Positions 1,605 through 60,049 of a stretch of DNA of 64,000 nucleotides are shown here, in pieces; position 1 is the stretch's first letter; each line of letters starts with the position of its first letter. This stretch comes from Geosiphon pyriformis uo1 (taxonomy: Eukaryota; Fungi; Glomeromycota). Both the position numbers and the translations under genes were made by a program. The stretch is taken from contig JAAOMT010000372.1 of assembly GCA_016748015.1 (NCBI GenBank), positions 496,001 through 560,000 of the forward strand. The letters run 5' to 3'. Under the pieces are notes generated by a model that was not told the DNA's origin, did no database searches, and saw nothing but the letters and a program-made list of their open reading frames with translations.

Positions 1605-2339
1605 GCACTAAAGATAGCAAAGAAATGTTATTACAAATTTATTGGTCATGGCATAGCTGAAGGTAATTATTACCTGGTGTTTTGTCTTACTTTAGTGTTA
1701 GCAAAGTATAATTGATAAATTTTATAAAATTATTTAAAGCTATTACCATGTTCGCAGCAGTACAATTTAAAGTGAGGTATGGAAAATAAAAGTTTCCCAT
1801 ATAAATTTTGGCTCTCTACGAATAGGTAATGGGTACTTTGGAAATTATGTTGAAAGAGGATTTATTGTCTATCGTGTTACCCATTCAAACGATTGGTATC
1901 CTCTATTATGAGTCATATTCAACCAGAATATTGGATTCCAAGCGACGACGATTGTGAGTGTTGGTCATCCGGTTTGTAACTTCAATCAATTGAGTTCATG
2001 TTTTTTTTTCAGCCAAAAATGTAATGCGTGTATATTCCTTTTTTTTATAGAAAATGTGGGATATAATCAGGGTCCATGCTTTGGCTGCACAATGGGGGTC
2101 TAGCATCTACCAAGTGAATGAAAAACTCAATGGAATTCGGAACATGATTCGAGTTCTCAGACGATTCACGTTGCATTGAAATCACAGCTAAGAAATGAAA
2201 ACATCTTAACAAGCTCTATCTTATTGGCTAATATAAGCATCACGGCTCTTTTAGAAGATTTTTTAATTATAATTAACAAAGGTTTAGACACCTATAGACA
2301 TCTTAATATATGAAAAATAATTCCTCAGCTAAAAAATCA

Positions 2340-3085
2340 ACTTAAAAATATTGGCCAAAGTTTCACATATCTTTTCAAATCTGTAAAAGTTAATCAAACC
2401 TCACCCAATTCGGTTTTTCTGCTTGGCTTTTTTTACCAATTTGGAATTGGGATCAATCTTAATGTTAGGCAGGCTTTTTTAGAATATCAGAAAAGCCCTT
2501 CTCAAAAAAATCCCTTAGAACAATTATTTCTCAGGCAATTTTATATAAATGGCATCGACATTGAAAAAATAATAAAAAAGGCTTCGAATGGTATACCAAA
2601 TCAGTGGAAAACGGATGAAAGATCTCGTAAAGGCATTTAAATGGTATACTAAAGAAGCAGAAATAGGTCATATAAGAGCACAATGTAGTCTTCGATTTTG
2701 CTATTATAATGGGGTTGGAGTAACCAAAGATTTTATAAAACCCGTTGAATGGCAACCAAAGCAGCAGAAAAAGGTCATTTGACTCTCCAATATAATCTTG
2801 AAATCTGCTATGAATATGGGTACGGAGTAACCAAAGATCTTGCAAAAACAGTTGAATGGTATGATAAAGCAGCCGAAAAAAGATGTTCAGATGTACAATA
2901 TAATCTTGCAATTTGTTAGTATCATGGGTATGGAGTGATGAAAGATTTCTTAAAAGCGGTTGAATGGTGAATTAAAGCAGCGGAAATAGGACATTCAAGA
3001 GCAGAAAATAATCTTGGATTTCGCTATTATAATGGGGATGGAGTAACCAAAGATGAGCAAAAAAATAAAAATCAATACTATTAAA
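2340..3085 (+). pseudogene. Sel1-like repeat (SLR) protein pseudogene; decayed upstream part may extend to ~1.2 kb
   Basis: ~108-bp (36-aa) periodic units near 2657, 2764, 2872 and 2980 translate to e.g. AFKWYTKEAEIGHIRAQCSLRFCYYNGVGVTKD and KAAEIGHSRAENNLGFRYYNGDGVTKD. There are frameshifts and stops, and the last repeat breaks off at ~3063. Confidence 0.85.
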
Positions 3086-4165
3086 AACTTATCTATGGAT
3101 TTACAAAGTTCAAACAAAATACACTAAAAGCTAAAAAGATTAATGAGCGAAATGCCTAATTTCAAAATGTCTTTGTTAATAAAAAATTTTCAATATTTTA
3201 ACGTTGTCAGCAGTTTGGTAACTTATTTTAAAAACTAAATGGTATTTAAAAATATTTGCACTTTTTTCTTAGTTTTAATTGTGACAGTGTAAAAAAACAA
3301 GAGATTGTTGGTAGATCATTTTATAAATTTAATTTGCTGAAAATTAATACTAAAAATAACAAAAATAAAATAAAAAGTTACTAGTTAAAATACAAAAGCT
3401 ATAAATATAAAATATGAATTTGTGTATTGAAAAAGAGTGGTTGAATATTCTATTAAAATATTCAAATTTACTTTAATAAGATAATAAAAAAACCATCAAA
3501 GCTTAAAAACAACTATAATTGAAAGTTACCAGTTTATGTACATTCCCAAACTCCTGGCTCTGGCTGACTTAAAAATATATATTAAACCTGATTCTAATAA
3601 TTGATTAATTTGAACAATTTAGCAAAAAAGTTTTATTACATTAAAAATATTGAATGCAAAAGTTCTTTCAAAAGAAGCTTTGATGTTTTCAAAAAAGAAA
3701 AGCCTGAAGACTTTGCAGAACATGTAATACAAAGTTTGGAAATTTATTGGGGTGAGTAAGTAAAAAAAAAGCCATCATTAAAAGGAATAAATTGAGAAAA
3801 AGTGGCATTTTCCTTTTTAACTTGATTAGTTAATAAAATTTCTATTTTTTCTGCTTGGTTTAATTAACTATTCTCTTTTTCTTGGCAAATAAAGTTTTAT
3901 TATCTGGTCAAATTTTATTTTTTTTCCATCTGGACTTTTTTTTGTTGTTTCGTTAAAAAATTTTTTAAGGAATTCTCATTTTACTTTTAATTGCTGCTAA
4001 CTTTTTTACTTTGCTTAAAAGCTCTGTTATACAATTTACTCTGATTTCTCTAAAAAAAATTTTTCGGTTTAAAAAGGTTCATAAGAAAATTTTTTAACTT
4101 TTGCTCCATTTTTTGCTTTGGCAAATAATTCTTTTAAACTGTTTACTTGAATTTCTTGGAGTTAC

Positions 4166-4586
4166 TCATATTCGGTTATAAAGATAAGTAGTAAAGTTAG
4201 GAAACTTCTTTTTCTGATTAATTTACCCTTATTTATTCCATAAAGAAATAAACATTTCTTTCATAATTTCTTTTTACTATAGAAACATAATGTAGCAAAA
4301 GATAAGTTTGCTGGTAGATTTCTAACTGTCATTTACACATTATATAACTCTAAAATTTCTTTAAAATCTCTGGTGAAATTAAGGTTTTTCTTATATTTTT
4401 CCTTATTTTTAGTGATAACTATATTAAAGAATTTTTTGATGGTTTACAAAGTTTTTTTTTCATCAAAACTGTATTTCCAGAAGTTATTTAGGAAAAATAA
4501 TTAATTTTAGCATAAAATTTCAACGTGATATTATTATCTTTGGCAATGAAGAAAGCTTGATTCATCTCTCAAATTAAATTTACCAT
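4166..4586 (-). pseudogene. folA: Dihydrofolate reductase pseudogene, bacterial type
   Basis: Manual minus-strand translation from ATG 4586: MVNLI(TGA)EMNQAFFIAKDNNI...YFS*ITSGNTVLMKKKT...NIVITKN...EIYQQT...YVSIVKRNYERNVYF...FPNFTTYLYNRI. This matches DHFR motifs (LIWAMD..IGKDN.LPW, T.GNTVLMGRKT, NIV.T, EIY, EGD.YFP). Confidence 0.85.
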
Positions 4587-4989
4587 TCAACTTAAATTAT
4601 GAGTTTAAGGAGAAAGCTCAGAAATATAATGAGGATATCTTGATAACATTTTAGAAAATCTTATGAAAAAATTTTCAGTATTTTTAAACTTTAAAACTAA
4701 TCTTTTTTTGATAAAGGTAGTAACTTCTATTTTCAGAAAAGTAAGTTTTACTTGGTGTTGACCAAGCATACTTGTTTGATGTTAAAAACTCCCTTTTTTT
4801 TTTTTTTATAGATAAAACTTAAAATTCATTGTTGAATTGTCTGAAAAATTAAATTTCCTTAGCCATGAAATTTTGATGAATTCGCCTGCTATTTTCGTAA
4901 GAGAGAATTTCTTGATCGATATTCGGCAGTAATGCATGGAGATTTTAACTGCCTTTTCCTCGGCAATTATTTCCAATTTATATTTTAAA

Positions 4990-5682
4990 TTAAGAAAATG
5001 AAAATAAAAAATTAATTTTTACTCTGGGATTAAGTTTCAGGGTTGCGGTTCTCTTTTTAACTTGTTCCAAATGATTTAAATAAACATGAACATCACTATT
5101 TGTAAGCTGTAAGAATCAATATATTGCCACTTCTTTGATATAATAAGCAAGATAATTTAGTGGAAATGAAATAGATGATAATCTCTGGTTAATTAATATA
5201 TGGCGTCGCCAAAAAAAAGATTATTTTTGAAACTTCAATTAAAATTTTTAGCTACTCTATTCCATTAAAGTTTCGCATTACTTACCATAAACTAGACCCA
5301 AGTCACCATGTTTTTTAGCAAACTTAACATCAGCTCTAACTCTCTCAAAAAACTCTTTCATAGTTTTAATTGTTTCACCACGGTAATCCGCAGATAATTT
5401 GAAATATTTTCAAGATCATTTATTTCAAATTTTCACTTTATTTTCAATTATATACTTAATATTAAAAACTATTTTTTTGATAAATTAAAGCAGTTTGTGG
5501 ACAATTGTTTTGAAATTCACCCTTTTTACAATTTAGTATTGGAAATTTTTCTCAAAGGTTAAAATGAATTTAGCAGCCAAAAAGGGCTTTAGTCCCTATT
5601 CCCACATTTTTTTTCCACTTATAATTATTGACTTTAAAAGATCAAGATATGCTTTTTCAGTTGTTGGTTTATTAATTAGCAT
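4990..5682 (-). pseudogene. thyA: Thymidylate synthase pseudogene, bacterial long-insert type
   Basis: From ATG 5682: EKAYLDLLKSII..GIGTKALFG..FNL.EKFPIL..VNFKTIVHKLL*FIK..NIKYIIENKVKI(TGA)NK(TGA)S(TGA)KYFKLSADYRGETIKTMKEFFERVRADVKFAKKHGDLGLVYGK*.RNFNGI..LKNLIE..RRHIL [deletion] LSCLLYQRSGNI [del] SYSL [del] DVHVYLNHLEQVK..LKLNPRVK. The catalytic PCH segment is deleted and there are several frameshifts. Confidence 0.92.
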
Positions 5683-5694
5683 AAGTTTAATGAT

Positions 5695-5850
5695 TTATCA
5701 AATTAATTTATTTATTTTGACTTAACTTTTTCTAATCTTTGGTAAAAATATTTTTTATTATTTTCATCTAAATTATTATTCGCTTGATCAAAAATAAAGA
5801 ATTCTTGGACGTCGCCAATTATAAATAAATTTTTTAAATAAATCAATGGC
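5695..5850 (-). pseudogene. 3' end of an ABC transporter ATP-binding protein gene
   Basis: Translation ...LFIIGDVQEFFIFDQANNNLDENNKKYFYQRLEKVKSK resembles Walker B/D-loop (hhhDE..NLD), followed by a degenerate H-loop that ends a few bases before the thyA ATG. Confidence 0.6.
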
Positions 5851-6526
5851 TTTAAATTATTTAAAACAAAATCAACTTTATTAAATAAATAATAATTTTT
5901 GTAAACTATAGTTATTATAATTCTAAATTTAATATATATAACAATTTTTTTAACATTAAATTTTGCAGTTTTAGATTTTATAAAATAAAATTTTAAAAAT
6001 TTTTAATAAACTTATTCAAAAATTTACAATTTGAATACAAAGAATTAACTAATTGAAAAAATAAAGTCTTTTAAATTTAAAATTAATTAAGCTTGGCTCT
6101 TTTAACATAATATTTATACTACATAAATTTCAGAAAAATTAAATTCTAAGAAACTTTGAGCATTTAAAATAATTGAAAATTTAATTTTATTGGCTTATTG
6201 ATTACAATTTTCAATAAATCTTAAAATTAAAATGTATTTCATGTATTATTATTGAAAACTTTATATTTAAAATAATATTTTTGAACACTAAATTTTGTCA
6301 ATAAAATTTGTAATTTTTCAAAAAATGAGAAAAATTTAAATTATTTAAATACTTGATTTTAAACTTATAAGAAACAAAACTTCTTTCTCTCTTCCATCCA
6401 AAAAACCCCAAAGAGCACTTTTTTGAAAAAGAAGTTTTTTATTTTATTTTTCTTGTTAGTTATCTCACCATTTTTTTACCTCATAACCCATTTGTAGTAA
6501 GCTTGGAAACTGCTTCTAATAGCAAT

Positions 6527-21003: not shown

Positions 21004-22246
21004 TATAATCCTACAGAGAACCAGCACCAACAGACACCATCCAAAAGTGGCAGAATCAGAAAACATAGGAGCAAACCATTTAAGATTTGTGAAATCCCTA
21101 TTTCAATACTATTGTTAATACTTGGAATTAAACCACAATCATATATCTGCCAAATCAGCCTTTAATTTCTATGTCAACGAAAAGATTTTCTCTTTGTTAG
21201 GAACATCAATAAATACTGAATCAGCCAGGGAAACTTTCTACAGAGAATTAATTCAAAATACCAATCTGTCAACAAATCACAATTTTGTCTCTATCATTAC
21301 TGAAATCAACAAAGAAATTGAACATCACACTCAACAAAGATATCTAATTACTTATGCCAATAAAGGCAAAGAAAAACTACAAACACCAGTGGTAACACTA
21401 TTATGCATAAATTATAGGAATTATATTAGAATATAAATTAGCCAATCAGAATAGATGTAGTAAATGTAGAATTCCAGAATTCCTTTCATCAGGAATTGCA
21501 GGATTCCAGGAATCCCAGGATTTCTATCATAAAGAATTGAGGAATTGAAGAATCTCAATTATGTATATATAGGGATAGCATTAGAAACAAAAAGAGACAT
21601 CCAGTTTAGATTTAATTTAAGCAACTTTCCAAATCACAATTATCTAATAAATAACTATTTGTTATCTCAAATCCATTTCCATTATCAATGCTTCATGTTG
21701 ATAGTAATCGACATTTAACCATACTGGAACAATAGCTCTTGATTATGGCTATTAACAGAATACTAACTTACCAAATTGCCTTGGCTTATTTTTTTTACTT
21801 TCTTTTCTTTATTTTATTTTATTTTTTTTTCTTTGATTTTGTTGTTGCATACTAATTAATTGAGAATTAAAAACACTGAGTTATTGACATCACAGATAGC
21901 CTGGTAAAAGACCCAGAAATAAGAGTAGATTTATATATATTATCGGTTAGCTTACCAGAAGGGCACAACTACCAAAATAAATCTGGCCACCAAGCTAAGA
22001 AAGAAATTGAAAACCAACTGTACACACAAACACCATCACTATTGAGTTTCTGTTCATTATACAAAAGACTTTATCAAAACTTTTAGATACAACATCTTCA
22101 GAACATCATCAACGGAAATAGCTTTTGAGCACCAAGTTACAGGTTTGTTATTTAATTTAACAGCAGAAATAATCATCTGTAACATTTGGTGCTCCCTGTG
22201 AAGTATAATCCTACAGAGAACCAGCACCAACAAACACTATCCAAAA

Positions 22247-25200
22247 GTGGTAGAATCAGAAAATATAGAAGCAAACCATTTAGGATTTGCAAAATTCTTA
22301 TTCCAACACTATTGTCAATACCTGGGATTAAACCATAATTACATATCTGCTGAATCAGCCTTCAATTTCTACATCAACAAAAAGATTTTCTCTTTGTTAA
22401 AAACACCAGTGAATACTGAATCAGCAAGGAAAACTTTCTATAGAAAATTAATTCAAAACACCAGCCTATCAACAAATCATAATTTCACATCCATCATCAC
22501 TGAAATTAACAAAGAAATTGAACATTACACCCAACAAAAATATCCAATTACATACGTTAGTAAAGACAAAGGAAAACTACAAACACCAGCAGTAACACCC
22601 AGAAAGATACAACCACCTACTTGGAAGAAAAACAAAATTGAATCCCCAAGCAACCCATCCTACCACTATACATCCAGAAGTGCCATTAACATATCATCAA
22701 CAGACACATTCCCATCAACTGCAATATTAGCATTTAGACAATTCCCATTCCAAAGTAGACAAAAGAAAACAGAATTATTAGGACCATATGGCAAATACTT
22801 TAAGGGATTTAATTTGCAATCATCAACCCCATCAGAACTTCAATCATTACCGTCTCCACCAGATTTCGGAATTTTTGATCTGTGGAAAGTACCAGAATCA
22901 GAAAAAGAGAAAGAAGAATCAGAGGATTAAGAATTCACTTATCAGCATCTAATCACTAAAAACCTGGGAGTTGAAACCCTGAATCCTCAAACTCAGCAAA
23001 ATTTAAATTTAGAAAATTCAGAAATCGAAACTCCAAATTATCAAAGGCAGAACAATCCAAACTCCAAATTAATTCATCAGTAAAACCTACCTCCAGTTAT
23101 CGTTATTGATCAACCACCAATTGAGCCAATCAGTGAGCCAATTCAACCATCTCAAGTACCACCCCAACAACTGTTACCTCTTCAACAACTTCAGCAACAG
23201 CCGCCTCAACAGCTCCAGCAGTCTATATTACCAATGGCCTATGCACCAATCACCAAATTAGAAAAATTCACTGGGGAAGAGGATGATGCTCAAGCTTGGT
23301 TAAACGACGTCGCCAAAGCAATCATAACAAACAATTGAAATGACGACAGAGCTCTTTAGGCAATTTCATATTTCCTTCAAGATACTGCGGATTTGTGATA
23401 TTAAAGCTTAGCCACAAAACCTCAAATGTTTGATGCATTTAAGCAGGTGTTTCTAAGAAATTTCAGTAATAATAACAGTATCAATTGTTTGGTAAATACT
23501 TTTACTACTATTAAACAAGGAGACACTGAAGCCATTACCACATACTTGGGATGATTCCATAGATGCCTGCACCAAATCCAAGCTATTAATGCTGATTATT
23601 TCACAGTGGCTCAAATTTTAAATCAATTTATCAAAGGCTTACGCAGTAGTATTCTCCAGCGCATATGTTCACTACATCCAGCAGATTTACAAGCAGCTGT
23701 CACTAACACCAGAGATTTTGAAGCAGCCGAACTCAAAACTAACCATGCCCAAGCCGTTAATCTAGTAATGAATGGATCATCTAAATTGGATTCTAAATTA
23801 AAACAATTCAGTAATTCTATCAATCAAAAATTAGAGGGATACTTAACTGACAATTAAGTAATTTATCAATCACCACAATGATGCAACAATCAAGAAAACT
23901 CCAATTGCATCCAAAATCAGTCATGTCCATCATTTTCGGCCAATCAACAGTGGCAATAAGAAATGCATGTTTGCCACTATTGTGGTAGACAAGAACATAT
24001 ACAATTCGATTGCTACCAGTGTTTAAATAACCAATAATCAGGAAATCAATATTGAAACCCCAATCACCAGTTTCAAGCTCCAAGTTTCCAGCAAAATCAA
24101 GAACAATATCAACACTTACCTCATTATGTACCAATAATGCAGCAATCAATTTATCAACCACCAGTATATCAAGCTCTCATTTATCAACCAACGGCCTCAA
24201 TTTATCAGCCATAGCCACAGATAATATATCAATCACAACCACCAACAATCTATTAACCCCAAATAGTTCAGACATCATCACAAAACTTACCTGCCAGTGG
24301 AGTCCAAAGACCAAAAATCACGCAGCAAAACTGGAGATCATCAATAGTAGTTTATCAACTGATTCCCAGCTCTTTCAGTCAACAAACAAGATCTTATTAA
24401 TGGAATTCGGGCACCAGTCATTTCCAAAACCCAAATTCTCAGGACTATTTAAGTCTCCTAGTTATCCCAAAAGATGCCTCACCCAGCAACCAGGAACCCA
24501 CCCAAAAACAACAAACACTTACCAGCAATATTCTGCCAGCAACAGTCACCAACAACAAATTACTAACTGCCATTTTCCCATTCGAGATCGAAGAGCCATC
24601 AAGTACTCTATTATTTAGTGGAGCTGCTCTCAATAAAAAACCCATCACCGCAATGTACACAGATGCTAAAGTTGATGGTCAATTCATCAAATTGATCCTT
24701 GATAGTGGTTCAGCAGACAGTATCATCACACGACAACTCATGGACCAATTAGGTTGCTGAGTTGATCAAGCTGCCAGCACCAGAATTATCACAGCTGATG
24801 AAGCGACTAAAATTCCAATTGGTGAAATCAACAATTTCCCTTTTGAAGTCAATGGCATTGTAACTCCCATTAAAGTTTTAGTAATAGAAACCACTCAATA
24901 CTAAGCTCTAATTGGTAATGACTGCCTATCCAAAGTCAACACGACATTAGACTGGAACACTTAAGAACTTCAGCTAACATATCAAGGCCGACATATACAT
25001 GTACCAGCCACATGTGGCCATTTCAAGACTCCTCTAAGAGAGAAACTATTGATCGAACTGGAGGAGGAGAAAGAGAAACCTATCTGGAAAGCTTACCAAG
25101 TCTCCTGAGCCAATGCCAACCACAACAAACTACCACTCATACTCTCATAGAATGACAAAGGAAAGAGAAAAGAAGAAAAAAAACTTATTGGAGGAACAAA

Positions 25201-28200
25201 CCAAGGATCATGGAGTGACAACGGCCAAAGCAAACCAGCCACTGAATGGAGTTGGGAAGAAAAGGGGAAAGAAAAAGAACAGGAAAAAGAACCAAAACAA
25301 ACCACCTCCTTTACTTATATTCTATATGTAACACAACCTCAAAACGCATACTGTTGACCCAAACTTGTATGCATCAGTTGTGACAAGAAACTGTCAACAA
25401 TGGGTGTATGCTGTAGTAAGGACGAAGAATGAATGACAGCAACCGAGTACTACTGTCGCCCATGCATCCTTGAATGTAATAGACGACCACCAAAAATAAA
25501 AAAATGGGACAGTACTTTGTGTTTAGCTTGTAGAGATACCCTCTTAGATGAAGGAATGTGGAAAGACATTCCTGGAAGAGAAAGAGCATGCAACAAGACA
25601 TGCCAATACACCATCCTGATCAATGACTGAGTATAAAAAGAAACTCCCATTGATGATGTCTGGAAGTGAGCATTAAGATGCCTGGAAAGATACCTACACA
25701 ACAAAGATGAGATCTGGAGAATGGCATATGCTATGTCAGAAGACGCTACAAAAGAGGAGCTGAGAGAAATCAAAAACAACCCACTTACCCTTCTTGAACC
25801 TGAGTACATTGTGACTTTTGATGTTTTTGACAATGTCAAAGACAATTCCAAGCAATCCCACAAGCACTACCAGAACCTGGCACTTACGAGAGAGGAGCAA
25901 GAACAACAGCTAGCACAATTGAATACAAGGCTGTGTCGCCATTGCCTAATTCTCAGCAACTTCAAATATTGTAACAATTGTGACCTCATTTACAATCTAC
26001 CACCATGCATGATATACACTATCCCAAAGGAAATTGAATCAATCAGCAACTGTGCATCAGAATCAGAATCAATTTTCAATCCCAATTTAAACTCTGACAA
26101 CGATGACAATAAAAACACTGGTTTTAGCTCGGTTTAATATGGTGACAAAAAGAACTCAGATTCAAACTCCGATTCAAACCATAAGCAATATATTGCACTC
26201 CTTAACCTTACTAAAGAACAAGAACTTAAATAGTTTAGCAATAATGATGAGGATATCATGCCAAAATGCGTGCATAATACTAATGCCAGGTTTAATCTAA
26301 GATATCCAGAAAAAGAAGCCATCAAATTGGAACCACATTCGCACACTTGCATTGATCTGAAAGTAGCTTTAGAAATTCTAGCAACAACAATGGTTTAACT
26401 AGCATCTAAGAGTAGTTTAGCGAAAAAAGGGATAAATATCAGAAGAGGAATAATTGACACAAAATACATAGGAAATATTATTGTTATGCTACAAAACGAC
26501 TCTGAAAAGGCCTATATCATAGAGCCAAACGAAAAGATAGCACAAGCAATATTCCTGCCTCTGGTGAAAATAGTGCAGTTAGTATCAATAGAAAATAGAA
26601 AAAAATTAGGGATAACAGCAAAAGGGATACAGAGATTTGGATCAATGAATAGAATAGATGTACTAGTCAATATGGCAAAAGAAGAAATTGTTAACCAAAA
26701 AGAAATTATCTCAATGGGTCAAGCAATTTCCATTCCACCATATGGCCAGTACATGGTAAGGATAAAGCAGGAAGTAAAAGAACAGAATCAGATTTTTGAA
26801 GCAAAACCAACCCTTTGTGAATCAGGAAAGATTGGACTCATCAATCTCCATATACCAGCCAAAAATTACAACCATATTAAAATTCCCATCTATAATAACA
26901 CAGGAAATAGCATAGTAATACCAGCCAGAACCACTATTGGATACTTAAGCACTGAAATAGAGGATCAACTACCAAGCACTATTCTGGACTTTGCACAGCT
27001 TTGTGGATATGTCAATATCACATCACAAATAATATATGGATGAAATGAATGTTATTTACTCCAACCAGAGCAATTGGAACATAGGAAACTTAGACTCACT
27101 TTAATATATGCACCTCAAGATGTTGCTCAACAATTTCAATGACATTTTTGCTAGTAAAAACAAGTTTGGCTGAACTGATATCATCCAACACTAAATCAAA
27201 ACTGGAGATGCAATGCCAATTAAATAAAGGACATACAGAGTGCCACCAGCCAGCCATGAGATCATCCATTAAGAAATCAATCAAATGCTTGACAACAGGC
27301 TAATTCAGCCATCAATGAGCCCATGGTTATTACCAGTAGTACTCATCTGAAAGAAAAATGGAAAGATTCACTTTTGTGTGGATTATAGAAAGCTTAATGG
27401 AATTACTCGTGGAGACAGCTACCCAACTCCACGAATCCAGGAATTATTCGACACTTTTGGTAGAAACAAATGGTTCTTAACATTAGACTTGAATAGTAAT
27501 TATTGGCAAGTAGCCATGGATCCAGCTAACAAGAAGAAGACAGCATTCACTACTAGAGAAGGAAATTTTGAATTTGAAATAATGCCCTTCGGCTTAACCA
27601 ATGCCCCAGCCATTTTCCAATGGCTAATGGAAATCATTTATACTGGCTTATTGTGGAAATCAGTAATTGTATACTTGGATGACATCAATGTATTCTCAAA
27701 AACATTTGATGATTATCTTTATCATCTTCAACAAGTGTTCGAAAGACTAAGAAAAGCAGGACTAAAGTTAAATGCAACAAAATGCTTCTTCGGCAAGACA
27801 GAACTAAAATTCTTGGGACACATAGTCAGTAAAGATGGCATCAAAACGGATCCAGAGAAAATAAAGATAGTAAAAAACTTTCCAGTACCAACCAATGTGA
27901 CTGAATTGAAATCATTCTTGAGATTTGCAAGCTATTATTGATGCTTTATAAAGAACTTTTCAAAAATAGCTCAACCACTCAATAATCTGCAAACCAAGAA
28001 TACCAAATATTAATGGACAGAAAGTCAACAAAAGCTTTTGATATTCTGAAAAGAAAGCTCATTTAAGCTCCAGTACTGATCTACTCAAATCACAACAAAC
28101 CATTCATTATTATTACTGATGCATCAAGTTAAGTATTGGGAGCAGTAATATCTCAGAAGGAACCAGACAGCAGAGAACATCCAATAGCTTATGCCAGCCG

Positions 28201-31523: not shown

Positions 31524-34500
31524 CCAAAAGAATACAACCACTCACTTGGAAGAAAACCAGAATTGAATCACCAATTGCTCCATCCTATTACTACACACTG
31601 GGAAGTGCCATCAATATAACATTAGCAAGCGCATCCACATCAAATGTGATATCAACATTTGGACAATTCCTATTCCAAAGTAAACAAAGGAAAACAGATC
31701 TACTAGGACCATATGGCAAATATTTTGAAGGATTTAAATTGTGATTACCAACACCATTAGGAATTTGATTACCACCACTTCAACTGAACTTTGGAACCAC
31801 TACACCATAGGAACTATCTAAAGAAGAAGAGGAAGAAGAATCGGAAGATCAGGAATTTACTTACCAAAACCCGATCCTTGAAAACCCAGAATTTGGAACC
31901 CCAAACATTCAAACTCAGCAAAAAAATCCAGAAATCAAAATTCCAAATATTCAAGCACCACAAAATCAAAACTCTGAAGTAATTAATCAACATTTACCTC
32001 CAGTTATTGTCATCAATCAACCACCAGTTGAACCAATTGGTCAGCCCATCCAAACACCAAACCAATAAAATCAACAACCACCCCCAGTACTGCCTCAACA
32101 ACAACAACAACTTCCACCACAGTAACAACAACAAATAGCATATGCACCAATTGTGAAGCTCGACAAATTCACTGGCAAAGAGAATGATACACAAGTTTGG
32201 CTAAACAATGTAGAAAAAACCATTGCAGCCAACAGATGGAATGATGTCAGAGCCATACAAGCCATACTCTATTTTCTCAAGGATACAGCAAACTCATGGT
32301 ATCAAAGCCTGGTTAACAAACCCCAAGATTTCAAACTAGAATTTTTGAGATACTTTAGCAATAACAATAGCATCAACGATTAGCCAACACTTTCACTATA
32401 ATTAAACAAGAAAAAACTGAAGCAGTTACTACATATCTAAGATGCTTCCATAGAAATCTGCAATAAATCCAAGCAATTGATGCTAATTATTTTACAGTGC
32501 CACAAATTTTCAATCAATTCATCTGTGACCTGCACAGTAGCATTTTGCAACATGTATGCCCATTGCATCCAGCCACTCTTCAGGATGCAGTCACACATGC
32601 CAGAGATTTTGAATCTGCCGAATTAGAAGCCAATCACATCCACGCCATGAACCTAGTGATGAATAGATCATCTGAATTAAATTTCAAATTGAAACAATTC
32701 AGTGATTCAATTAATCAGAAATTAGAAAGATACTTAGCTGACAATTACACAATTTATTAACCACTACAATAATGCAATAATCTAAGAAACATGAATTGTT
32801 TCCAAAATCAGTCATGTCCATTATCATTATTAGCAGCACCTAATTAGCTGTGGCAGCCAGAAATGTGTGTTTGCCACAACTGTGGTAAACAAGAACACAT
32901 AAGAGCAGACTACAGATTTTATAGCAACAATTTATGATCGGGAAATCAATATTGAAACCCCGATCGCAGATTTCAAACTCCAAATCATTACCCAAATCAA
33001 GATTAAACTACTTACCTGCCAATGACACAGTCACAAATCTATCAACCACCAGTATATCAAACTCCAGTCTATTAAACACCTGCAATCTATCAACCACAGT
33101 CACAAGTAATTTATCAGCTACAATCTCAAGTAATTTATCAATCCCAACAACAAATTCAAATACTGCTACAAAACTTGTCTCAAAATGGAATCCAAAGGCT
33201 GAGAATAATACAACAAAACTAGCAATTGGTGATAGTAGTCCACCAACTGATCTCCAGTTTGTCAAATCAGCAAACAGGATCTCGTCAGTAAAATTCAAGT
33301 ACTGGTGCCACCCAAAACCCAAATTCCCAAAACTATTTAAGTCTCCTGGTTACTCCAGAAGATGCCCTACCCACTGAACCGAAAACCAACCTATAATTAA
33401 TACTTACCTGCAATATCCCACCAGCCACCATCACAGAAGATGAGTTACTTGCAGTCATATTTTCATTTAAAATTGAGAAACCATTAGAAGTTCTTTTGTT
33501 CAGTAGAGCCACTATTGAGAAAAAACCCATCATGGTAATGTACACCAATGTCAAAATTAATGGCCATTCTATCAAGCTCATTTTGGATAATGAGTCAGCA
33601 AGCAGCATTATCACATGACAACTTATAGACCAATTAGGTCACCAAGTTGATCATGCTACCAGTGCCAGAATTATAACAGCCGATGAAGCAACCAAAATTT
33701 CTATTGGCAAGATTAACAATCTACCCATTGAAATTAATAACATCACTCTACCAATCAAGGTATTAGTAATGAAAGCAACCCAGTATCAAGCTCTCGTTGG
33801 CAATGACTGGTTGTCCAAGACCAACGCAATGCTCAACTGGAACATGCAAAAACTCCAACTCAGCCAAAATGACCAACACATGCAAGTACTGGTCACGTGT
33901 GGCCATTTCAAATCTAACAATGTTATGTCATCAATGCTGCTTATTGATTTTGAGAAGGAAAAACCAAAGCCTACTTGGGAGGCATACTAAGTATTGTGGA
34001 CTGACGTCGAGCACAATGAGCTACTGCCAATTCTAGACTGGAAAGAAAAGAACAATGTAAAGAGAAAAGGAACAGAAATAGAAGAACATATCTGGGAGAC
34101 CACTATCAATGCCTAAAACAACAACAATGAAAGCAAAGCAATGCCAACCAGCTGAGAAGAAAAAGGAAAAGGAAAAGAGAAAGAAGAAGACTTATCTGAA
34201 AAAGCCAACAAAGCCACAGAAAAAATAACCAGTGGCTGGAAAAGAAAATATTTACATGAGCCAGTAAGGAAACACCTTACATTCCCTTAAAATGTCAGGA
34301 CTGTAAGAAAAAACTCTCTTCCATGGGAGCATAGATCATGCCAGATGAAGACTACTGAACACAAACCCACTACTACTGCAAACCATGCCATAGAGAACAC
34401 TATGGTTACCCAAAACAACAAGACAAATGGGACAATGAACTATGTCTTGCTTGCGGCAAACAGTTACTCGACAAAGAAATGTGGAACAACATTCCTAGTC

Positions 34501-37425
34501 GAGGAGGAATGTGTGATGCTTCGTGCCAATACATGATCTTCATCAGTAATTGAGTAAGTTGTGGCACACCAATAACAGCCGCCTAGCACCGAGCAATCTC
34601 TTGCTTAGAAGATTACCCACATAACGAAAACAAAATCTGGCAAATGGCCAATGCCAAAGTAGAAGGCACTTTGCCCAGTGAAATTCTGGAGATTAAGAAC
34701 AACTCTTCAAAACCAACAGACATTGTTTTGGTTCTCAACCTGGACGTTTTTTTCAACTTAGAAAACAGCCCAAAAGAATTCCATGAACACTATCAAAACT
34801 TAGCACCCACCAGAGAAGAGCAAAAACAAAGATTGGAAGAAATAAACACTCGACTATGTGACCATTGTTTGATTCCATGTGACTTTCAATATTGTAATGA
34901 ATGTGACCTTATTTACAATTCACCATCACACATGATCTACATGATTTCTGAAGAGGAAAAACCAATCAGCAGCTGTGCATCAGAATTGAAATCAATTTTC
35001 AATCCCAATTCAAACTCCGACAAGGACGACAATAAAAACACCAGTTCCAGTTCCATTCAAAATAACATTAACAATGACAATAATTCCAACTCAGATTTAA
35101 ACTCTGATTTAAACTACGAACAATATATCGCACTCCTCGACCTCACTAAGGAGCAGGAACTTAAATGGTTTAGCAATAACAATGAAGGTATTATGCCAGA
35201 ACACACACATGATATAGATGCCAGGTTTGATTTGAGGTATCTAGGAAAAGAAGCCATCAAATTGAAACCACATTTACGCACCTGCATTAATCTGAAAATA
35301 GTGCTGGAAATTCCAGCAACAATAATGGTTCAACTAGCATTGAGGAGTAATTTAGCAAAAAAAGGGATAAACATTAGAGGAGGAATAATTGACACAGGAT
35401 ATGTAGGAAATATCATTGCTATGCTACAAAATGATTCGGAAAAGGCCTATATAATAGAGCCAAATGAGAAGATAGCACAGGCAATATTCCTGCCTCTGGT
35501 AAAAATAGCTCAGTTAGTGTCAGTGAGAAATAGGAAAGAGTTAGGAATAACAGCAAGAGGGATACAAAGATTTGGGTCAACAGGTAGAATAGATGTACCA
35601 GTTAATATGGTGGAGAAAAAAATTGTTGGCCAAGAAGAAATTATCTCAACCAGTCAAGCTATTTCTATTTCACCATATAGCCAGTATATGTTAGCAATAG
35701 AAAGGAAAAAAAAAAAGCAAGAACAGATTTTTGAAGCTAAAACAAACCTTTGTAAATCAGGAGAGATTGAACTGATCAATCTCCACATACCAGTCAAAAG
35801 CTATAGCTGCATAAAAATTTCCATCTACAACAATACTGGCAATGTTATTAACATACCAAAAAGAACCATCATCAGATATTTAACTACAGAAATAGAAAAC
35901 CAACCACCAAACACCAAACACCATTCCGGACTTTTCACAGCTTTGTGGATATGTCAATATTACATCACAAACAATATATAGATGAAGCAAATATTATTTA
36001 CTCCAACCAGAACAATTGAAACAAATGAACATAGAAAACTTAGACCCACTCCAACATATGCAACTTAAGATGTTGCTTAACAATTTCAATGACATCTTTG
36101 CCAGCAAAAATGAGTTTGGCTGAACTGACATCATCCAGCATTAGATCAAGACTGGAGATGCAATGCCAATTAAACAAAGAGCATACAGAGTACCACCAGC
36201 CAGCCATGAGATCATTTGTCAAGAGATAAACCAAATGCTTGACAACAAGTTAATTCAACTATCAATGAGCCCATGGTTGTCACTAGTGGTATTTGTCCAT
36301 AAAAAGAATGAAAAAATCCAATTTTGTGTGGACTACAAAAAACTCAATGGTGTAACTCATGGAGACAGCTATCCAACTCCACAAATACAAAAATTATTTG
36401 ACACTTTCGGCGAAAACAAATGGTTTTCAACATTAGACTTGGACAGTGGTTACTAACAAGTAGCCATGAATCCAGCCGACAAAGAAAAAATGGCATTCAC
36501 AACTAGAGAAGAAAATTTTGAATTTGAAGTTATGCCATTTGGCTTAACCAACACTCCAGCTACATTCCAACGGCTAATGGAAATCATGTACACTAGCTTA
36601 TTGTGGAAATCAGTAGTTGTATACTTAGATGACACCAATGTATTCTTAAAAACATTTAATGACCATTTTCATCATTTTCAACAAGTGTTCGAAAGGCTAA
36701 GAAGAGCAGGACTAAAGTTAAATACAACAAAGTGCTTCTTTGGCAAGACAAAACTAAAATTCTTAGGACATATAGTTAGCAAAAACGGCATAAAAACAGA
36801 TTCAGAGAAAATAGAGATAGTAAAAAACTTTCCAATACCAACCAACATGACCGAGCTGAAATCATTCTTGGAATTTGTAAGCTATTATCAATGCTTTATA
36901 AAGAACTTTTTAAAGATAGCTCAACCACTCAATAATCTACAAACCAAGAATACAAAATATGAATAAACAGAAAATCAACAAAAAGCTTTTGATATTCTGA
37001 AAAGAAAGCTCATTCAAGCTCCAGTACTGATCTACTCAGATCACAACAAACCATTCATTATTACCACTGATGCATTAGGTTAAGCATTGGGAGCAGTACT
37101 ATCTCAGAGAGGATTGGATGGAAGAAAACATCTAGTCACATATGCCAGCCAAGGTTTGACTTCAGCCAAAAAGAACTATGGAACACCAGAATTAGAACAT
37201 CTAGCAATCTACTGGACAGTTATGAAATGGAAAGAATACTTGAACCAAAAGTTTGAAATGTATACAGATCACAAAGAATTAACATCACTCCAAAAACAAG
37301 AATTTGGAGATGGAAGACAGTCAAAATGGAAAATAGCACTTTTGTCATATACTTATACCATATATTATAAAAAGGAAAAAGACAATGGAAATGCTGACAG
37401 TTTGTCACAAATGAGACAAATCTAA
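31524..37425 (+). pseudogene. Gypsy-1 ORF1 polyprotein, main part (N-terminal gag piece at 21047-21398)
   Basis: Capsid (KLDKFTG..VWL); CHNCGKQEHIRAD knuckle; protease LILDNES; 445-aa ORF 34644-35981 containing the dUTPase; RT YLDD; RNase H ending NADSLSQMRQI*. Confidence 0.92.
35193..35586 (+). pseudogene. dUTPase domain of Gypsy-1 (all five motifs, uninterrupted)
   Basis: DARFDL / LRSNL / GGIIDTGYVG / KIAQAIF / RGIQRFGSTG correspond to trimeric dUTPase motifs 1-5. Confidence 0.93.
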
Positions 37426-42115: not shown

Positions 42116-43546
42116 TACTTATTAATTGTAAAGTTGAGGTTCCTTATTTAACAATTAGTGGTTCAGATATTTCAATTGCTAAAAAAGGTAAGGCTCATAG
42201 ATACTTAGGAATTTTTTTATCTACTGATGGTCTTTCAAAGCCCAGCCTCACCAAGGCCCAGTTAGATGTAAAATTTTTTGTTAACTTGGTTCTGAGAAAA
42301 ACAGTTTCTAATAAACAGTTTCTCTATTTGGTGTTTGTTGTTTTACAGTCTATTATTAAATATAGATTGCAGTTTAGTCATACTTCTGTAAATGTTTGTG
42401 AGAAATAAGATAGGCTGCTAAAAAAGGATTTGAAGCTCAAGACCAACTTGCCCAGAGATTTCCCCAATGAAGCCATTTCATATCTTGAATTATATGGTCT
42501 TAAGATCTTTAGGCAGTTGCAAGCCAAAAACTCTTTGGCTAATTTGGTACTGTTTGCCAATTCGAAAAGTGTTTTTGGCAGATTATTTGAACATAGGACA
42601 ATAGATCTGTAGGCTGTTAGTTGGATGCCCTGGCAACCTCTTAGTTTTCCAGTTGTGTTGTCATTAAATCCTGTGAATTTTTTTTTAGTTGACATGACCA
42701 ACACTCTGGCATCATATAGGCTCTTCTTGGGCAATGTTTTGTCAAATGTTTTCTGAGCTGGTAGTGACATACCTGTTGCTGACATTTTGGATTTGAATTA
42801 GTATATGAGTGTGATTGATTCACTAAAAAAGTTTGGCATCATTTTTGTAAACCAGCTTTTAGACTATTATGGTACATGTTTTACATGGAGTAATTTTCAC
42901 AGATAAAAAAAACTGGATCTAAAAAGTCCAGCTCCTGGTTGGTTTAGTGTATTAACAAAATTCATTGGAAGTGGTGGTTTGGTCAGTGGTCATGTTCTAG
43001 TTTCTGATCTAGCTTCTGGTGGTTGCTTAGTTAGTCTAAGTTCTATTAGTAAATGTCTTCTTGAAAATGCTTCAGATGATGTAGTGGTTTATATTGATGG
43101 TTCAGTTAAAGGTTTGGGTTCTATAAGTGCTCATAGTAGTACTGCTGCTTATTTTTTTAATATTGATAATGATATAAGAGTTGGTGTGAGTGGCTTGCTT
43201 TTATTAATTCTGACTAAACTACATGTCATTGCTTTTACTTTGGAGTGTGTTCCTGTTTCCAGTTTGGTTACTCTTTTTACAGACAGTCAAGCATCTTTGA
43301 ATGCTTATATCTCTTTTAAAAATTCTACTGGTCTCAATTTTTGTGATAAATATTGGATTGAAAAAGAGTGAATCCAGCAGATTATCATATCAAAAAACTT
43401 GTTGATAGTCTGGAACAAAATCAAGGGCCACTCTGGGGTTTATGGCAGTGAGCATGTTGATTTATTAACCAATGCTGCTATTGGTTCTGATATCATGCTA
43501 CCTGTTGAAATGTCCTGCCATTTTTTGTCTATTAAAAGAAAGTCTG
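42116..43546 (+). pseudogene. LINE-A ORF2 part 3 (RT C-terminus and RNase H)
   Basis: HRYLGIFL; VYIDGSV; FTDSQASL; KIKGHSG. Confidence 0.88.
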
Positions 43547-44396: not shown

Positions 44397-47300
44397 GTGG
44401 CAAAATCAGAAATCATAGAGACAAACTATTTAAGATTCGCCAAATCCTTATTTTAACAGTACAGTCAACCATTAGGATTGAACAATAATCATTTTCTAGC
44501 AGAATCAGCCTTTAACTTTTACATCAATGATAAAATTACAGATTGCTTAAAAGAAACAGTTAACATTGAATCAGCAAGAGAAAACTTCTATACAGAATTA
44601 TTTCAACATACCAGCTTACCAAGAAATTACAGTTTCGCACCAATTATTAGGGAAATCAATTAAACTATTGAAAAGTATATACAATAACAATTTCCCATCA
44701 CCTATGCAGATAAAGACAAAGGAAGATTGCAAACCCCAGCAGTAATACCAAAACAAATACAACCACCCAATTGGAAGAAAACCTGAGTTGAATCACTCAC
44801 TCATTTATCATACCATTATATGCCTAGAAGTACCATCAACATCTCATTAACAGATGCATCCATATCAAATGTGACATCAACCTTTGGATGCTTTTTATTT
44901 TAAAGTAAACAATAAAAAACAGAGTTATTAGGACCATATGGCGATTACTTTGAAGGATTTAAATCGTGATCGCCAATACCATCAGGATTCTGATCACTAC
45001 TACCTCAGCCAGATTTCAGAACCATGAGTCTCTAAGAAATAACAAAATTGGAAGAGGAACAGAAAGAAGAAGAAGAATCTGAAGATCAAGAATTTACTTA
45101 CTAGAACCCGATTACAGAAAACCCAGACATTGGAACCCCAAACTTTCAGACTCAGCAAAATCTAAATTTAGAAAATCTGGAAATTGAAACTCTGAATTTT
45201 CAAATACAGCACAATCAGAATGATTAAAACCCTGACATTAATAATCAACAACACTTACCTTCAATAATTGTGATCAATCCACCTCCAGCTCCACCAATTA
45301 ACAAACAGTAACAACAGCCACTTCAACCACCTCAACAACCACAGCAGCTGCTTCCACAGCCACAACAACAACTTTAACAACCAAACTTGAATCCAATGGC
45401 CTATGTTCCAATAGCAAAACTCGAGAAATTCATTGGCGAAAAGAACAATGCCCAAGTATGGCTTAACAACGTAGAAAAAACCATAGTGGCTAATGAATGG
45501 AATGACACCAAAGCCATGCAAGCCATCTTATATTTTTTCCAGAATACAGCTGATTTATGGTATCAAAGCCTAGTCAACAAATCCCAAGATTTTAATGCAT
45601 TTAAAATTGAGTTCTTAAGATACTTCAGTAACAATAACAGCATTAACAGGCTAGTAAACATCTTCACTACCATCAAACAAGAAGAAAATAAAGCAGTTAC
45701 TACTTATTTAGGATGCTTCCACAGGAATCTGCACCAGATCCAAGCCATCAATGCCAATTATTTTACAATGACTCAGATCCTAAATCAGTTTATTCACAGA
45801 TTATGCAGTAATATTCTGCAATGGATATGTTCAATGCATCCTATCAATCTACAAGCAGCTGTCACAAATTCCAGAGATTTTGAAGTCACTGAATTAGAAG
45901 CCAACCACACCCAAGCCATTAATCTAGCAATGAATAGATCATCTGAATTGGATACCAAATTGAAACAATTTAGTAATTCTATTAATCAAAAATTAGAGAA
46001 ATACTTAGCTAACAATCATGCAATTTATCAATCACCACAATGATACAATAATTCTGGAAATGCGAATTGTTTCTAGAATTAGTTGCATCCATTATCGTTG
46101 ACTAATTAACTGTAACAACAGGAAACACGTGTTTGCCACTATTATGATAAACAAGAACACCTACAAATTAATTGCCACTATTGCTTAAATAACTAATAAT
46201 TGGGAAATCAATATCAAAACCCCGATCACCAGTTTCAAATTATGAATAATCCACCAAACTCAGAGCCATATTATTAGACTTACTTACCTATAATGCAGCA
46301 GTCACCTTATCAACTACCAGTATATCAAACACCAATTTATTAACCAATAACACTAGCAATTTATCAACCGCAGCCACAACCCATTTATTAGTCGCAGTTT
46401 CAGATAATCTATTAGCCCCAACAAATTCAAACACCGCCACAGAATTTACCTCAAAATGGAACCCAAAGGCCAAGATTGACTCAACAAAGCTAGAAATTGT
46501 TGATGGTAGTCCACCAACTGATCTCCAGTTCTTCCACACAACCAGCAGAATCTCAACAATAGAATTTGGGCACCAAATATGCCCAAAACCCAAATTCCCA
46601 GAACTATTTAAGTCTACTGGTTACCCCAGAAAACACTCAACCCAATAACCCGGAAACCAATCAACACCAAATACTTACCAGTAATATTCTGCCAGCTACT
46701 ATCACCGAGAACAAATTACTGAATGCCATCTTTCCGTTTGAACTCAAAGAACCATCAACTATGCTGTTATTTAGTGGAGCTGCTCTGAAAAAAAAACCTA
46801 TTACTGCCATGTACACTGATGCCAAAGTTGATGGCCACTTCATCAAATTGATCTTAAACAGTAGATTAGCTGGCAGCATTATTACAAAACTGCTCATGGA
46901 CCAATTAGGTCACTGAGTTAATTGTGCTGCCAGTGCTAGGATCATAACTGCTGATGGAGCAACCAAAACTCCCATTGGTAAGATTGATGACTTCCCTTTT
47001 GAAGTCAATGGCATCATCATTCCCATTAAAGTCCTAGTAATGAAAGCAACCCAATATCAGGCATTAGTAAGAAATAACTGGTTATCTAAAACCAATGCCA
47101 TACTGGACTGGATGACACAGAAGCTCCAACTAAGCCAAAACGGTCAACACACATGTGTACCAGCCACGTGTAGCCACTTCAAGACCACTAACTCAACAAC
47201 ACCACTCATCAAATTTGAGGAAGAAGAAAAAAAACCTACCTGGAAAGCCTACCAAGTTTCCTGGGCTGACACAGAACACAATGAGCTGCTGCCAGTATTT

Positions 47301-50300
47301 TTATGGGATGACAACAGCAAAGGAAAACTAAGAAGAACTTATCTGGAATGCTGACCAAGAATGAGAAACCAACTATGATTCAGAAGAACCAACAGTTTGG
47401 AAATAAAAAGAAAAGACAAAAAGAAAAGGAAAGGGGAAGAAAGAAGAATCAATATTCACCAACAACACCCCTTATAATTCCTACAATACACCACAACAAT
47501 CTGCTTATTATCGCCCAAAACTAGTGTGTGTTGATTGCAGCAAGAAATTGTTGTCAATGGGTGCTTGCTGTGACAATAATAAGGAGTATAATTTGGCAAC
47601 TAAATTTTATTGTCATTTATGTGTCCTTGAACATTTTGGAAGACCAAAACAAATAGAAAAATGGAATAATGAATCCTACTTGGCTTGTGGAGAAACTCTT
47701 CTGGATGAAGGAATATGGAATAACATTCTTGGGTGAGGGGGAACATGCAACAAATTGTGTCAATACATGATTCTCATAAGTGACTGGGTAAGAAAAAAAA
47801 TGCCCATAGACACTGCCTAGAGACAAGCTGTCAAATGTCTGGACAGGTGTTCACACAATAATGATGAAATCTAGTGAATGGCACTCGCCAAGATCAAAAG
47901 AGTGACCTCTAAAGAAATAAAAACAATTAAAAATAACCCACCTAAACCTATAAAACTTGACTGAGACCCAAAACAAGTCATAAATCTCCTAAATCCAGAA
48001 CAATTCTATGAACATTATCAAGAACTAACACCTACCAGAGAAGAACAAGAGCAGTGTTTGGAGCAGTTGAATATTCAATTATGTTAACATTGCTTAATTC
48101 CCTGTGACTTTTAATATTGTAATGAGTGTGACCTTATCTACAATCCATCACCATGCATGATCTACACAATCTCAGAAGAAAAACCAATCAGCAGCTGCAT
48201 ATCGGAATCAGAATCAGTTTTTAATCCCAATTCAAACTCTGACAACAATGACAACAAAAACACTGGTTCCAGTTCTGCACAATATGGCAATAAAAATATT
48301 AATGATTCAGGCTCTGATTCAAACTCTGAAATATACATTGCACTTCCTGATCTCTCTAAGGAGCAAGAACTCAAATAGTATAGTAACAATAATAAAGGTA
48401 TTATGCCAGAACATACGCATGATATCAATGCAGAGAAAAGAAGCCATCAAATTAAAACCAAATTTGTACACATGTATTGATCTCAAAATAGCTTTAGAAA
48501 TTTTAGCAACAACCATAGTTCAATTAGCATCTAGGAGTAGTTTAGCGAAAAAAGGAATCAACATCAGAGAAGGAATAATTGATGCAAAATATATAAGAAA
48601 TATCATCACTATGCTACAAAATAACTCGGAAAAGGCCTATATTATAGAGCCAAATAAAAAGATAGCACAAGCAATATTCTTACCTCTGGTAAAAATAGCT
48701 CAGTTAGTTTCAGTAGAAAAGAGGGAAGAACTAGATATAACAGCAAGAGGGATATAGGGATTCAGATCAATGGGTAGAATAGATATACTAGTCAATATGA
48801 CAAAGGAAAAAATGATTGACAAAGGAGAAATTATCTCAACTTATCAATCAATTTCTATTCTATCATATGATCAGTATATGTTAACTATAAAAAGAGAAGT
48901 AAAGAATCAAGCTCAATTGTTTGAAGCAGAAGCCACCATTTGTAAATCAGGAGAGATTGGACTTACTAATCTCTACATATCAGCCAAAAGCCCCAAAAAC
49001 ATCAAAATTCCCATTTACAACACAACTGGAAAGGTTGTCAAAATACCAAAGAGAACCATCATTGGATATTTAACCACTGAAGTTGAAGATCAACCACCAA
49101 ATTACATTCCAGATTTTTCACAACTTTGTGAATATGTGGATATCACATCACAAACCATCTATGGACAGAGTAAATGTTATCTGCTCCAACTGAAACAATT
49201 GAAACAGATAAACATGGGGAATTTAGACCCACTTCAACAGATATAATTAAAAATGTTACTCAGCAATTTCAATGACATTTTTGCTAGTGAAAATGAATTT
49301 GGCCACACCGACATTATCCAACATCAGATCAAGACTGAAAATACAATGCCAATTAAACAAAGAGCATACAGAGTACCATCAACTAGCCATGAGATTATTT
49401 ATCAAGAAATTAACTGAATGTTTAACAATGGGCTAATTTAGCCATTAATGAACCCATGGTCATTACCAGTAGTACTAGTCCAGAAGAAAAATGGAAAGAT
49501 CCATTTCTGTGTGGATTATCAGAAACTGAATGAAGTGACTAAAGATGATAGCTATCCAACTCCAAAGATCTAAGAACTATTCGATGCTTTTGGAGAAAAT
49601 AAATGGTTTTCAATACTGGATTTAGATAGTGGTTACTGGCAAATAGTTATAAATCCAGCCAACAAAGAAAAAACAGCATTTACCACAAAAGAGAGAAATT
49701 TTGAGTTTGAAGTCATGCCATTTGACTTGATGAACACTCCAGCAATATTCCAACAGCTCATAAAAATTGTCTATACTGGATTACTATGGAAATCAGTAGT
49801 CGTATACTTGGATAACACCAATGTGTTCTCAAAAACATTTGATGATCATCTGCATCATCTCCAACAAGTGTTTGAAAGATTAAGAAGAGTCGGACTAAAG
49901 CTAAATGTGACCAAATGTTTCTTTGGAAAAACTGAATTCAAGTTTTTGGGACATATGGTGAGCAAAGATGGAATCAAAACAGATTCAGACAAGATTGAAA
50001 TTTTCAAGAACTTTCTAATACCAAATAATCTCACAGAATTGAGAGAATTCTTGGGATTTGCCAGATACTACTACTGCTTCATCAAGAACTTTTCCAAAAT
50101 AGCTCAATTACTACACCAACTCCAAACAAAGAATATGAAGTATAAATGGACAAAAACTCAACAAGAAGCTTTTGATATATTAAGAAGAAAGCTTATCTAA
50201 GCTTCAGTATTGATGTATCCAGACCACAGCAAACCATTCATAATCACCACTAATACATCAGGCCAAGCATTGGGAGCAGTACTTTCACAGAAAGAACTCA

Positions 50301-59575: not shown

Positions 59576-60049
59576 GACTTTAAAGGGTAAACCAAGACCT
59601 TCAGTATTCGCTGTATAATACATTCGAAATAAATATCATCAACCATATAGTTCCAGCGTGAATACTTTGAATAAAGTTGAATAATAGTCGTGATCGATAA
59701 GAAGAGCTTTTTTGGCAAGATCTGCTTGAACCCATATAATGGGTTCTTTCAATATTCAGCAAAACCACGCTAATACAATGAGCCTGAATTCTTAATCGAT
59801 CTATCAAGACCGAGTAATTATGATTAATTTTCTCTCGGGTCCACTACTTTTCAAATGCGGGATTAAAATTCTTTACAGAAAAAAAGACATCAAATCAAAA
59901 ACCGTATTAAATCAAGATTAGCTTTCACGATTTGTGAGTTGTAAAGAAACTAGACCAAAATACAACTACTATATCTAATCGAAAATACCATTGATATTAA
60001 AATACTTTTGTATATTATAATCCACACATTCCAAGGGGGGGACTATTTG

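Follow-up and report, generated by a model that had tools for sequence, protein, structure and literature searches.

Remains of an ABC-thyA-folA fragment in code 4 spelling, probably from a Mollicutes-related endobacterium, in a nuclear contig of Geosiphon pyriformis

How do the remains of three bacterial genes come to lie in a large contig of a fungus? The question is raised by Geosiphon pyriformis, a member of the Glomeromycota, whose assembly comprises 128.3 Mb in 792 contigs. The stretch of DNA analysed here, referred to as the window, covers positions 496,001-560,000 of contig C647 (64 kb). When window positions 3000-6000 are translated with TGA read as Trp, remnants of three genes become recognisable on the minus strand: the tail of an ABC-transporter ATPase, thyA for thymidylate synthase (TS), and folA for dihydrofolate reductase (DHFR). 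The original prediction had placed these genes on this strand and at these positions, and tblastn searches, joined by Pfam for thyA, bear it out. The best explanation, and a likely one, is that a fragment of at least 1.6 kb of the chromosome of a Mollicutes-related endobacterium (MRE) passed from symbiont to host and now lies dead in a nuclear contig of the fungus. The genome on which this explanation turns (G043) is that of the endosymbiont DhMRE of Dentiscutata heterogama, an MRE of a Glomeromycotina fungus. The remnants, and the codons within them on which the argument leans, are the following.

5715-5837, minus strand: C-terminal remnant of an ABC-transporter ATPase, found by a tblastn match to a DhMRE open reading frame (ORF); its 5' part is missing
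4993-5682, minus strand: thyA pseudogene of the bacterial long-insert type (Pfam, tblastn, alignment)
5427-5425 and 5418-5416, minus strand: two TGA codons at the invariant Trp of the ThyA IWNEW motif (alignment; TGA in DhMRE at both)
4587-4992, minus strand: spacer between the thyA and folA remnants, about 340-400 bp without a match
4166-4586, minus strand: folA (DHFR) pseudogene, identified by pairwise matches; the end near 4166 is projected
4571-4569, minus strand: TGA at the Trp of the DHFR N-terminal LIW motif (TGA in DhMRE at the same site)

The thyA remnant opens at an ATG at 5682, 29 nt past the stop of the ABC remnant, and extends to about 4993. The Pfam profile PF00303 matches its N-terminal half at 5266-5655 with 24.7 bits against a cut-off of 24.3, and a C-terminal piece reaches 17.7 bits; three TGA, one TAG and three TAA codons lie inside the first match. 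Throughout the assembly this profile finds three places, namely two exons of the host TS on contig C623 and window 5266-5655. ThyA proteins of 80 named bacterial loci match 5655-4981 with E-values down to about 1e-28 (tblastn). Between the IWNEW and GDLGPVYG motifs the remnant carries the long insert SADYRGET...FAKKHGDLG. Alignments thereby confirm the earlier view that the enzyme is of the type seen in Firmicutes and Mollicutes and not the eukaryotic one. The same long insert is also present in many Sphingomonadales and other Proteobacteria, so the insert alone is no pointer to Firmicutes or Mollicutes. A phmmer search of 1.8 billion proteins with the 43-residue insert piece returned mostly repetitive proteins rich in lysine and glutamate, true ThyA accounting for three matches, and a metagenome scan found nothing closer than 60%. 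The remnant has eight TAA or TAG stops, two frame changes (5191/5188 and 5123/5112) and deletions of about 4, 15, 29 and 7 residues, which include the PCH active-site stretch with the catalytic Cys. As judged from its sequence, it is a pseudogene by descent and would yield no enzyme.

The fungus has its own genes for both enzymes. Its TS gene is interrupted by an intron, and the protein has the short loop of the eukaryotic enzyme. A Geosiphon pyriformis protein matches this TS at 100% identity, and its named relatives prominently include proteins of other Glomeromycotina and Mucoromycota. Some 2 kb separate the host DHFR (C623:344087-344707, minus strand) from the host TS (346778-347720, plus strand), which points the other way; both genes are intact and intron-bearing, and their contig is not that of the relic. 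With this pair the fungus echoes, in eukaryotic form, the linkage of thyA and folA in bacteria. A decayed copy of the host TS was also considered as a source of the relic, and is ruled out by an identity of only 25% between the two proteins, the lack of an intron and the bacterial insert.

The folA remnant begins at an ATG at 4586 and can be aligned to 4245, with frame changes near 4427 and 4332 and with stops both within the aligned part and in the C-terminal tail. Since the Pfam profile DHFR_1 (PF00186) finds no folA relic here, its identification is built on pairwise matches to real DHFRs. In Mollicutes loci the ORFs next after thyA, which encode DHFR, match 4592-4245 with E-values from 1e-6 to 4e-8, the best match outside DhMRE (4e-8) coming from an Acholeplasmatales DHFR. 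The DHFR of DhMRE matches with 65 bits (E 7e-16), while matches elsewhere do not exceed 42 bits. With the frame changes followed, the relic DHFR is 51% identical to that of DhMRE over 109 positions, and all other genomes stay at or below 38%.

The ABC remnant comprises about 41 codons and ends ...FFIFDQANNNLDENNKKYFYQRLEKVKSK, with a stop at 5714-5712. A Walker-B-like FFIFDQ and a short tail are kept, and everything upstream of the signature region is gone. The tail at 5837-5715 matches the C-terminal end of a 508-residue DhMRE ORF (L135:7512-9038) with 49% identity over 41 residues (E 2e-7, tblastn). This ORF carries a Walker A (GENGFGKST), a signature (LSTGQ) and a Walker B (IFIFDE) motif, and scores 45 bits to ABC_tran. 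Pfam, PF00005 included, is silent on the tail, which keeps the Walker-B end and what follows it only; because of this silence the identification depends on the pairwise match to a real protein. Among the genomes searched, DhMRE alone gave a match to the ABC tail. Pfam is almost blank on all stop-free pieces of the relic, because these are too short and too decayed. The original prediction had also called the three genes closely packed, which is true of the ABC gene and thyA and does not extend to thyA and folA: neither DhMRE nor Pfam nor the rest of the genome offers a counterpart to the spacer at 4587-4992.

The search for a donor covered 251 genomes of the Mycoplasmatales, the order that holds the code 4 matches. 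Of these, 159 have thyA, and nearly all of the thyA matches listed carry 2-8 in-frame TGA codons. DhMRE, whose genome was recognised by an EF-Tu 100% identical to that of the endosymbiont of Dentiscutata heterogama, is the closest relative of all three remnants. In an alignment of 109 ThyA proteins the relic is nearest to DhMRE (46-47% over about 205-213 positions; next best 41%), which takes first place in 864 of 1000 bootstraps when ThyA identity is recomputed on resampled columns, and in tblastn it leads with 115 bits, all others reaching at most 99. Concatenated ThyA and DHFR unite the relic with DhMRE, and not with the host, both in a quick tree of 56 rows (SH-aLRT 97) and in a careful one of 36 rows (UFBoot 99, SH-aLRT 97). 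These results uphold the proposed Mollicutes-related, code 4 endobacterial donor. A pattern-based locus search put Acholeplasmataceae at the top and did not recover DhMRE, whose FAKKY and GELG fall outside the required patterns FAKK[HW] and GDLG.

The gene order of DhMRE agrees with that of the relic in part. In both, thyA is preceded by an ABC gene, as the original prediction would have it, and the immediate succession of thyA and folA seen in the relic is common in the Mycoplasmatales loci searched. The genes of the two are alike in their identities of 49%, 47% and 51% (ABC, ThyA and DHFR, respectively), in TGA at the same Trp sites and in the ABC gene upstream of thyA. They differ in that those of DhMRE are intact and lie on a bacterial chromosome of 34% GC, whereas the relic is dead, has 24.6% GC and lies in a fungal contig. 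Taken together, these comparisons support an MRE-lineage bacterium with code 4, sister to DhMRE, as the donor.

DhMRE itself has the traits of its group. It encodes eight full-length eukaryote-type kinase genes and has three Peptidase_C48 matches, with in-frame TGA; in each of four other Mycoplasmatales there is a single kinase gene and nothing that matches Peptidase_C48. Kinase and LRR genes taken from the host are a published hallmark of MRE (PMC10507103). Its GTDB family holds five genomes of 0.2-0.7 Mb, among which thyA and folA are found in DhMRE only; neither gene was found in the other four (G012, G024, G034 and G052; 0.2-0.6 Mb). A DhMRE ORF of 1127 residues (C1:501001-504384, minus strand) combines a kinase domain without TGA with Sel1 repeats. 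These repeats are 37-45% identical to Geosiphon arrays, one at window 2320-3060 and others at C653:807-843 kb, and the ORF looks, by its sequence, like the host-derived genes described for MRE.

The spelling of the relic at its Trp sites bears on the code of the donor. The TGA codons of the IWNEW and LIW motifs do fall on invariant Trp columns, as had been claimed, and at the two IWNEW sites TGA is used by 29/32 and 26/32 code 4 Mycoplasmatales. Across the five invariant ThyA Trp columns DhMRE reads TGG, TGA, TGA, TGA and TGA, and the relic TAA, TGA, TGA, TGC (5277-5275) and a deletion; for the Trp of the DHFR LPW motif, DhMRE has TGA where the relic has TTG (4523-4521). Six conserved Trp sites thus survive, three with TGA, one each with TAA, TGC and TTG, and none with TGG or TAG. 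The earlier statement that such sites read TGA, or TAA once, and never TGG or TAG was right about the missing codons and overlooked the sites with TGC and TTG. A further TGA suggested as a possible Trp, at 5412-5410, aligns with Phe or Tyr. TGG does occur twice in the relic (5604-5602 and 5211-5209), in columns where relatives have Ser or Glu/Val/Asp and not Trp. In-frame TGA falls on a Trp column in 3 of 5 cases, with 9 Trp columns among about 367, for which the chance probability is 1.4e-4. The corresponding figure for TAA and TAG is 1 of 15 (Fisher's test against TGA, p = 0.03). For the four surviving ThyA Trp sites, an origin from TGA takes two steps and one from TGG takes five. Read codon by codon, the relic retains the code 4 spelling of its donor.

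The surroundings of the relic belong to the fungus, and they are as follows.

3383-3750, plus strand: left host flank, part of a PRK/uridine-kinase family gene that is written in the standard code and present in multiple copies
3751-4165, no strand assigned: stretch that runs from the folA end to the nearest host repeat, with the left edge of the bacterial DNA somewhere inside
5817-6386, no strand assigned: right host flank, a non-coding repeat that is very rich in AT and dispersed in the genome

The left flank has 70-73% DNA identity to fragments on C436 and C701, and the C436 copy scores 28 bits to Pfam PRK; the Sel1 array at 2320-3060 lies on the same side. The right flank is present in dozens of copies on many contigs (67-79% identity), many of which begin at the point corresponding to window 5817-5822, and the copies sit in ORF-free DNA of 18-20% GC. 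By contrast with these repeats, the core at 3751-5816 is single-copy in the assembly. In the assembly, then, the relic is bounded within 0.1-0.5 kb by host repeats on both sides, inside a contig that reaches beyond 822 kb, which agrees with the predicted picture of a decayed piece set in the DNA of a glomeromycotan host. The stretch 3751-4165 has no match in the host genome, DhMRE or Pfam and holds no tRNA. All sampled 31-mers of 3600-6200, junctions included, are present in sequencing run X1, which is probably the source sample of the assembly, so that the 31-mers are not independent support. The GC content of the relic resembles that of the surrounding AT-rich DNA, and that of DhMRE thyA is 37.6%. 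The assembly, together with the 31-mers of run X1, supports nuclear integration as the probable state of this DNA.

The proposed history has several steps. A piece of the chromosome of an MRE of the 'Candidatus Moeniiplasma' lineage, carrying the 3' end of the ABC gene, thyA and folA, would have been released in the coenocytic cytoplasm and have entered the nucleus. There it would have been joined at a chromosome break, presumably by end-joining, a route suggested by nuclear copies of mitochondrial DNA (NUMTs) and by Wolbachia inserts. The AT-rich host repeat abuts the ABC end and probably truncates it. The genes would never have been usable in the fungus, because TGA is a stop there and because the fungus has its own TS and DHFR. 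Neutral decay towards AT, by way of stops, frameshifts and deletions, would have followed, and the relic genes are by now broken under any genetic code. The relic probably has no present function and is a molecular fossil of a symbiont genome.

Several observations weigh against this account. The tree of ThyA alone did not place the relic, whose branch measured 3.3 changes per site, and it was the addition of DHFR that did so. The relic branch is very long in general (2.0-3.3 changes per site), and the relic is also skewed in composition; for this reason the clade with DhMRE should be weighed alongside the best matches, which are independent results for each of the three genes. Synteny is partial, since folA of DhMRE lies 330 kb from its thyA and a 143-residue ORF separates its ABC gene from thyA. 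At one DHFR Trp column the relic has TTG, a codon that a single change derives from TGG and that takes two from TGA. The stretches 3751-4165 and 4587-4992 are left unexplained. Finally, MRE genomes are rich in pseudogenes, which make up 7-35% of them (PMC10507103), and decay alone is no proof of a nuclear place. The frameshifts and deletions that had been put forward against a living symbiont are indeed there; for the same reason they are weak taken alone, and it is the host flanks that carry the argument.

The first of the competing explanations holds that the bacterial genes arrived as cargo of a cut-and-paste transposon with code 4, and not as a bare piece of chromosome. The two stretches without matches, 4587-4992 and 3751-4165, could be what remains of such a vehicle. 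However, no inverted repeats bracket the relic within the window, its core is single-copy, no MRE-like DNA lies beside other copies of the flank repeats, and the adjacency of the ABC gene and thyA is bacterial chromosome order. At E < 1e-3, moreover, DhMRE ORFs matched by the 64-kb window are limited to those of the three genes and a Sel1 protein. Transposon cargo is accordingly considered unlikely. A marginal tblastn match to a 90-residue DhMRE ORF at 43368-43484 (plus strand; E 0.001, 35% over 43 residues) is probably due to chance.

According to a second alternative, a read or contig of a living MRE, pseudogenes and all, was falsely joined into a fungal contig. MRE contigs have been met before in assemblies of fungi (PMC11423566; PMC10507103), and the abundance of pseudogenes in MRE genomes would account for the decay. 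NCBI lists EF-Tu proteins of MRE type, which share 80-96% identity with the DhMRE protein, under the names Racocetra fulgida, Racocetra persica and Gigaspora margarita, and these probably come from endobacterial contigs in fungal assemblies. Such an artefact would nevertheless require the assembly to have gone wrong twice within 2.1 kb, well inside a contig of more than 800 kb and with host repeats on both sides. The junction 31-mers exist in run X1, and the GC content of the relic has fallen to the level of the AT-rich nuclear DNA around it. The assembly contains no second thyA, and a stricter-filter search of it found no bacterial-type 16S, giving only matches of 18S length (390-536 bits) and small fragments. 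A false join is on this evidence quite improbable.

A donor among other Mollicutes or Firmicutes, possibly with the standard code and with TGG decayed to TGA, finds some footing in the insert piece (56-63% identity to the code 11 family Acholeplasmataceae), in the failure of ThyA alone to place the relic and in the TTG codon, and it hardly deserves credence against the best match of all three genes to DhMRE, the 99/97 clade, and the five steps from TGG as opposed to two from TGA, all the more as it leaves the missing TGG and TAG unexplained. Mitochondria likewise read TGA as Trp, and they were dismissed as the source for their gene content: to our knowledge, they carry none of the ABC, thyA and folA genes.

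With transfer from an MRE as the preferred explanation, a more specific version can be offered tentatively, at somewhat less than even confidence. The relic may be a fossil of the MRE of the Geosiphon lineage that preserves an ancestral ABC-thyA-folA order and two genes of nucleotide metabolism that were found in only one of the five DhMRE-family genomes searched, and it may have arrived as bare DNA without a mobile vehicle.

Elsewhere in the window, two features of composition stand out. Positions 60001-62000 are extremely AT-rich, with 9-12% GC, and the DNA from there to the end of the window has 17-20% GC. The regions at about 22000-26000, 32000-35000 and 45000-48000 have a common profile of GC, GC skew and AT skew, which suggests three copies of one long retroelement.

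NUMTs, their plastid counterparts (NUPTs) and Wolbachia inserts are the familiar examples of organellar or symbiont DNA in host chromosomes. The Geosiphon relic resembles them in being non-functional donor DNA that decays in a host chromosome while keeping the gene order and the code of the donor. It differs in that its donor is a facultative MRE of a fungus, that its code made the genes unreadable on arrival, and that its integration is known from an assembly.

Movement of genes from MRE to their hosts has been described before. A review (PMC8227670) credits Sun et al. (2019) with the finding that genes for RNase III, Uma2 and HNH endonucleases and a methyltransferase passed from MRE to Diversispora epigaea. 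The direction is the same, from MRE to a Glomeromycotina nucleus. The Diversispora genes are nonetheless of a different kind, being reportedly retained, of defence type and presumably working, while the Geosiphon relic is a dead fragment of housekeeping genes in code 4 spelling. Papers on MRE stress transfer from fungus to MRE (PMC10507103), Li et al. (2018) traced none of the bacterial genes of Rhizophagus to an MRE donor, and in a 2026 review the passage of genes to the fungal host figures mainly as something to be expected late in endosymbiosis. Transfer from MRE to arbuscular mycorrhizal fungi is thus already published as a direction, and in the open literature searched its one instance is the few retained genes of Diversispora epigaea. 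What is new in Geosiphon pyriformis is a clean fossil of three genes of housekeeping type side by side, for which no vehicle was found and whose sister genome can be named.

Such a fossil provides a clean marker by which integrated MRE DNA can be told from contamination in Glomeromycota assemblies. It also indicates that an MRE lineage once had thyA and folA linked. If the relic did arrive as bare chromosomal DNA, the difference in genetic code would act as a barrier, and most symbiont genes that reach a fungal nucleus would be dead on arrival.

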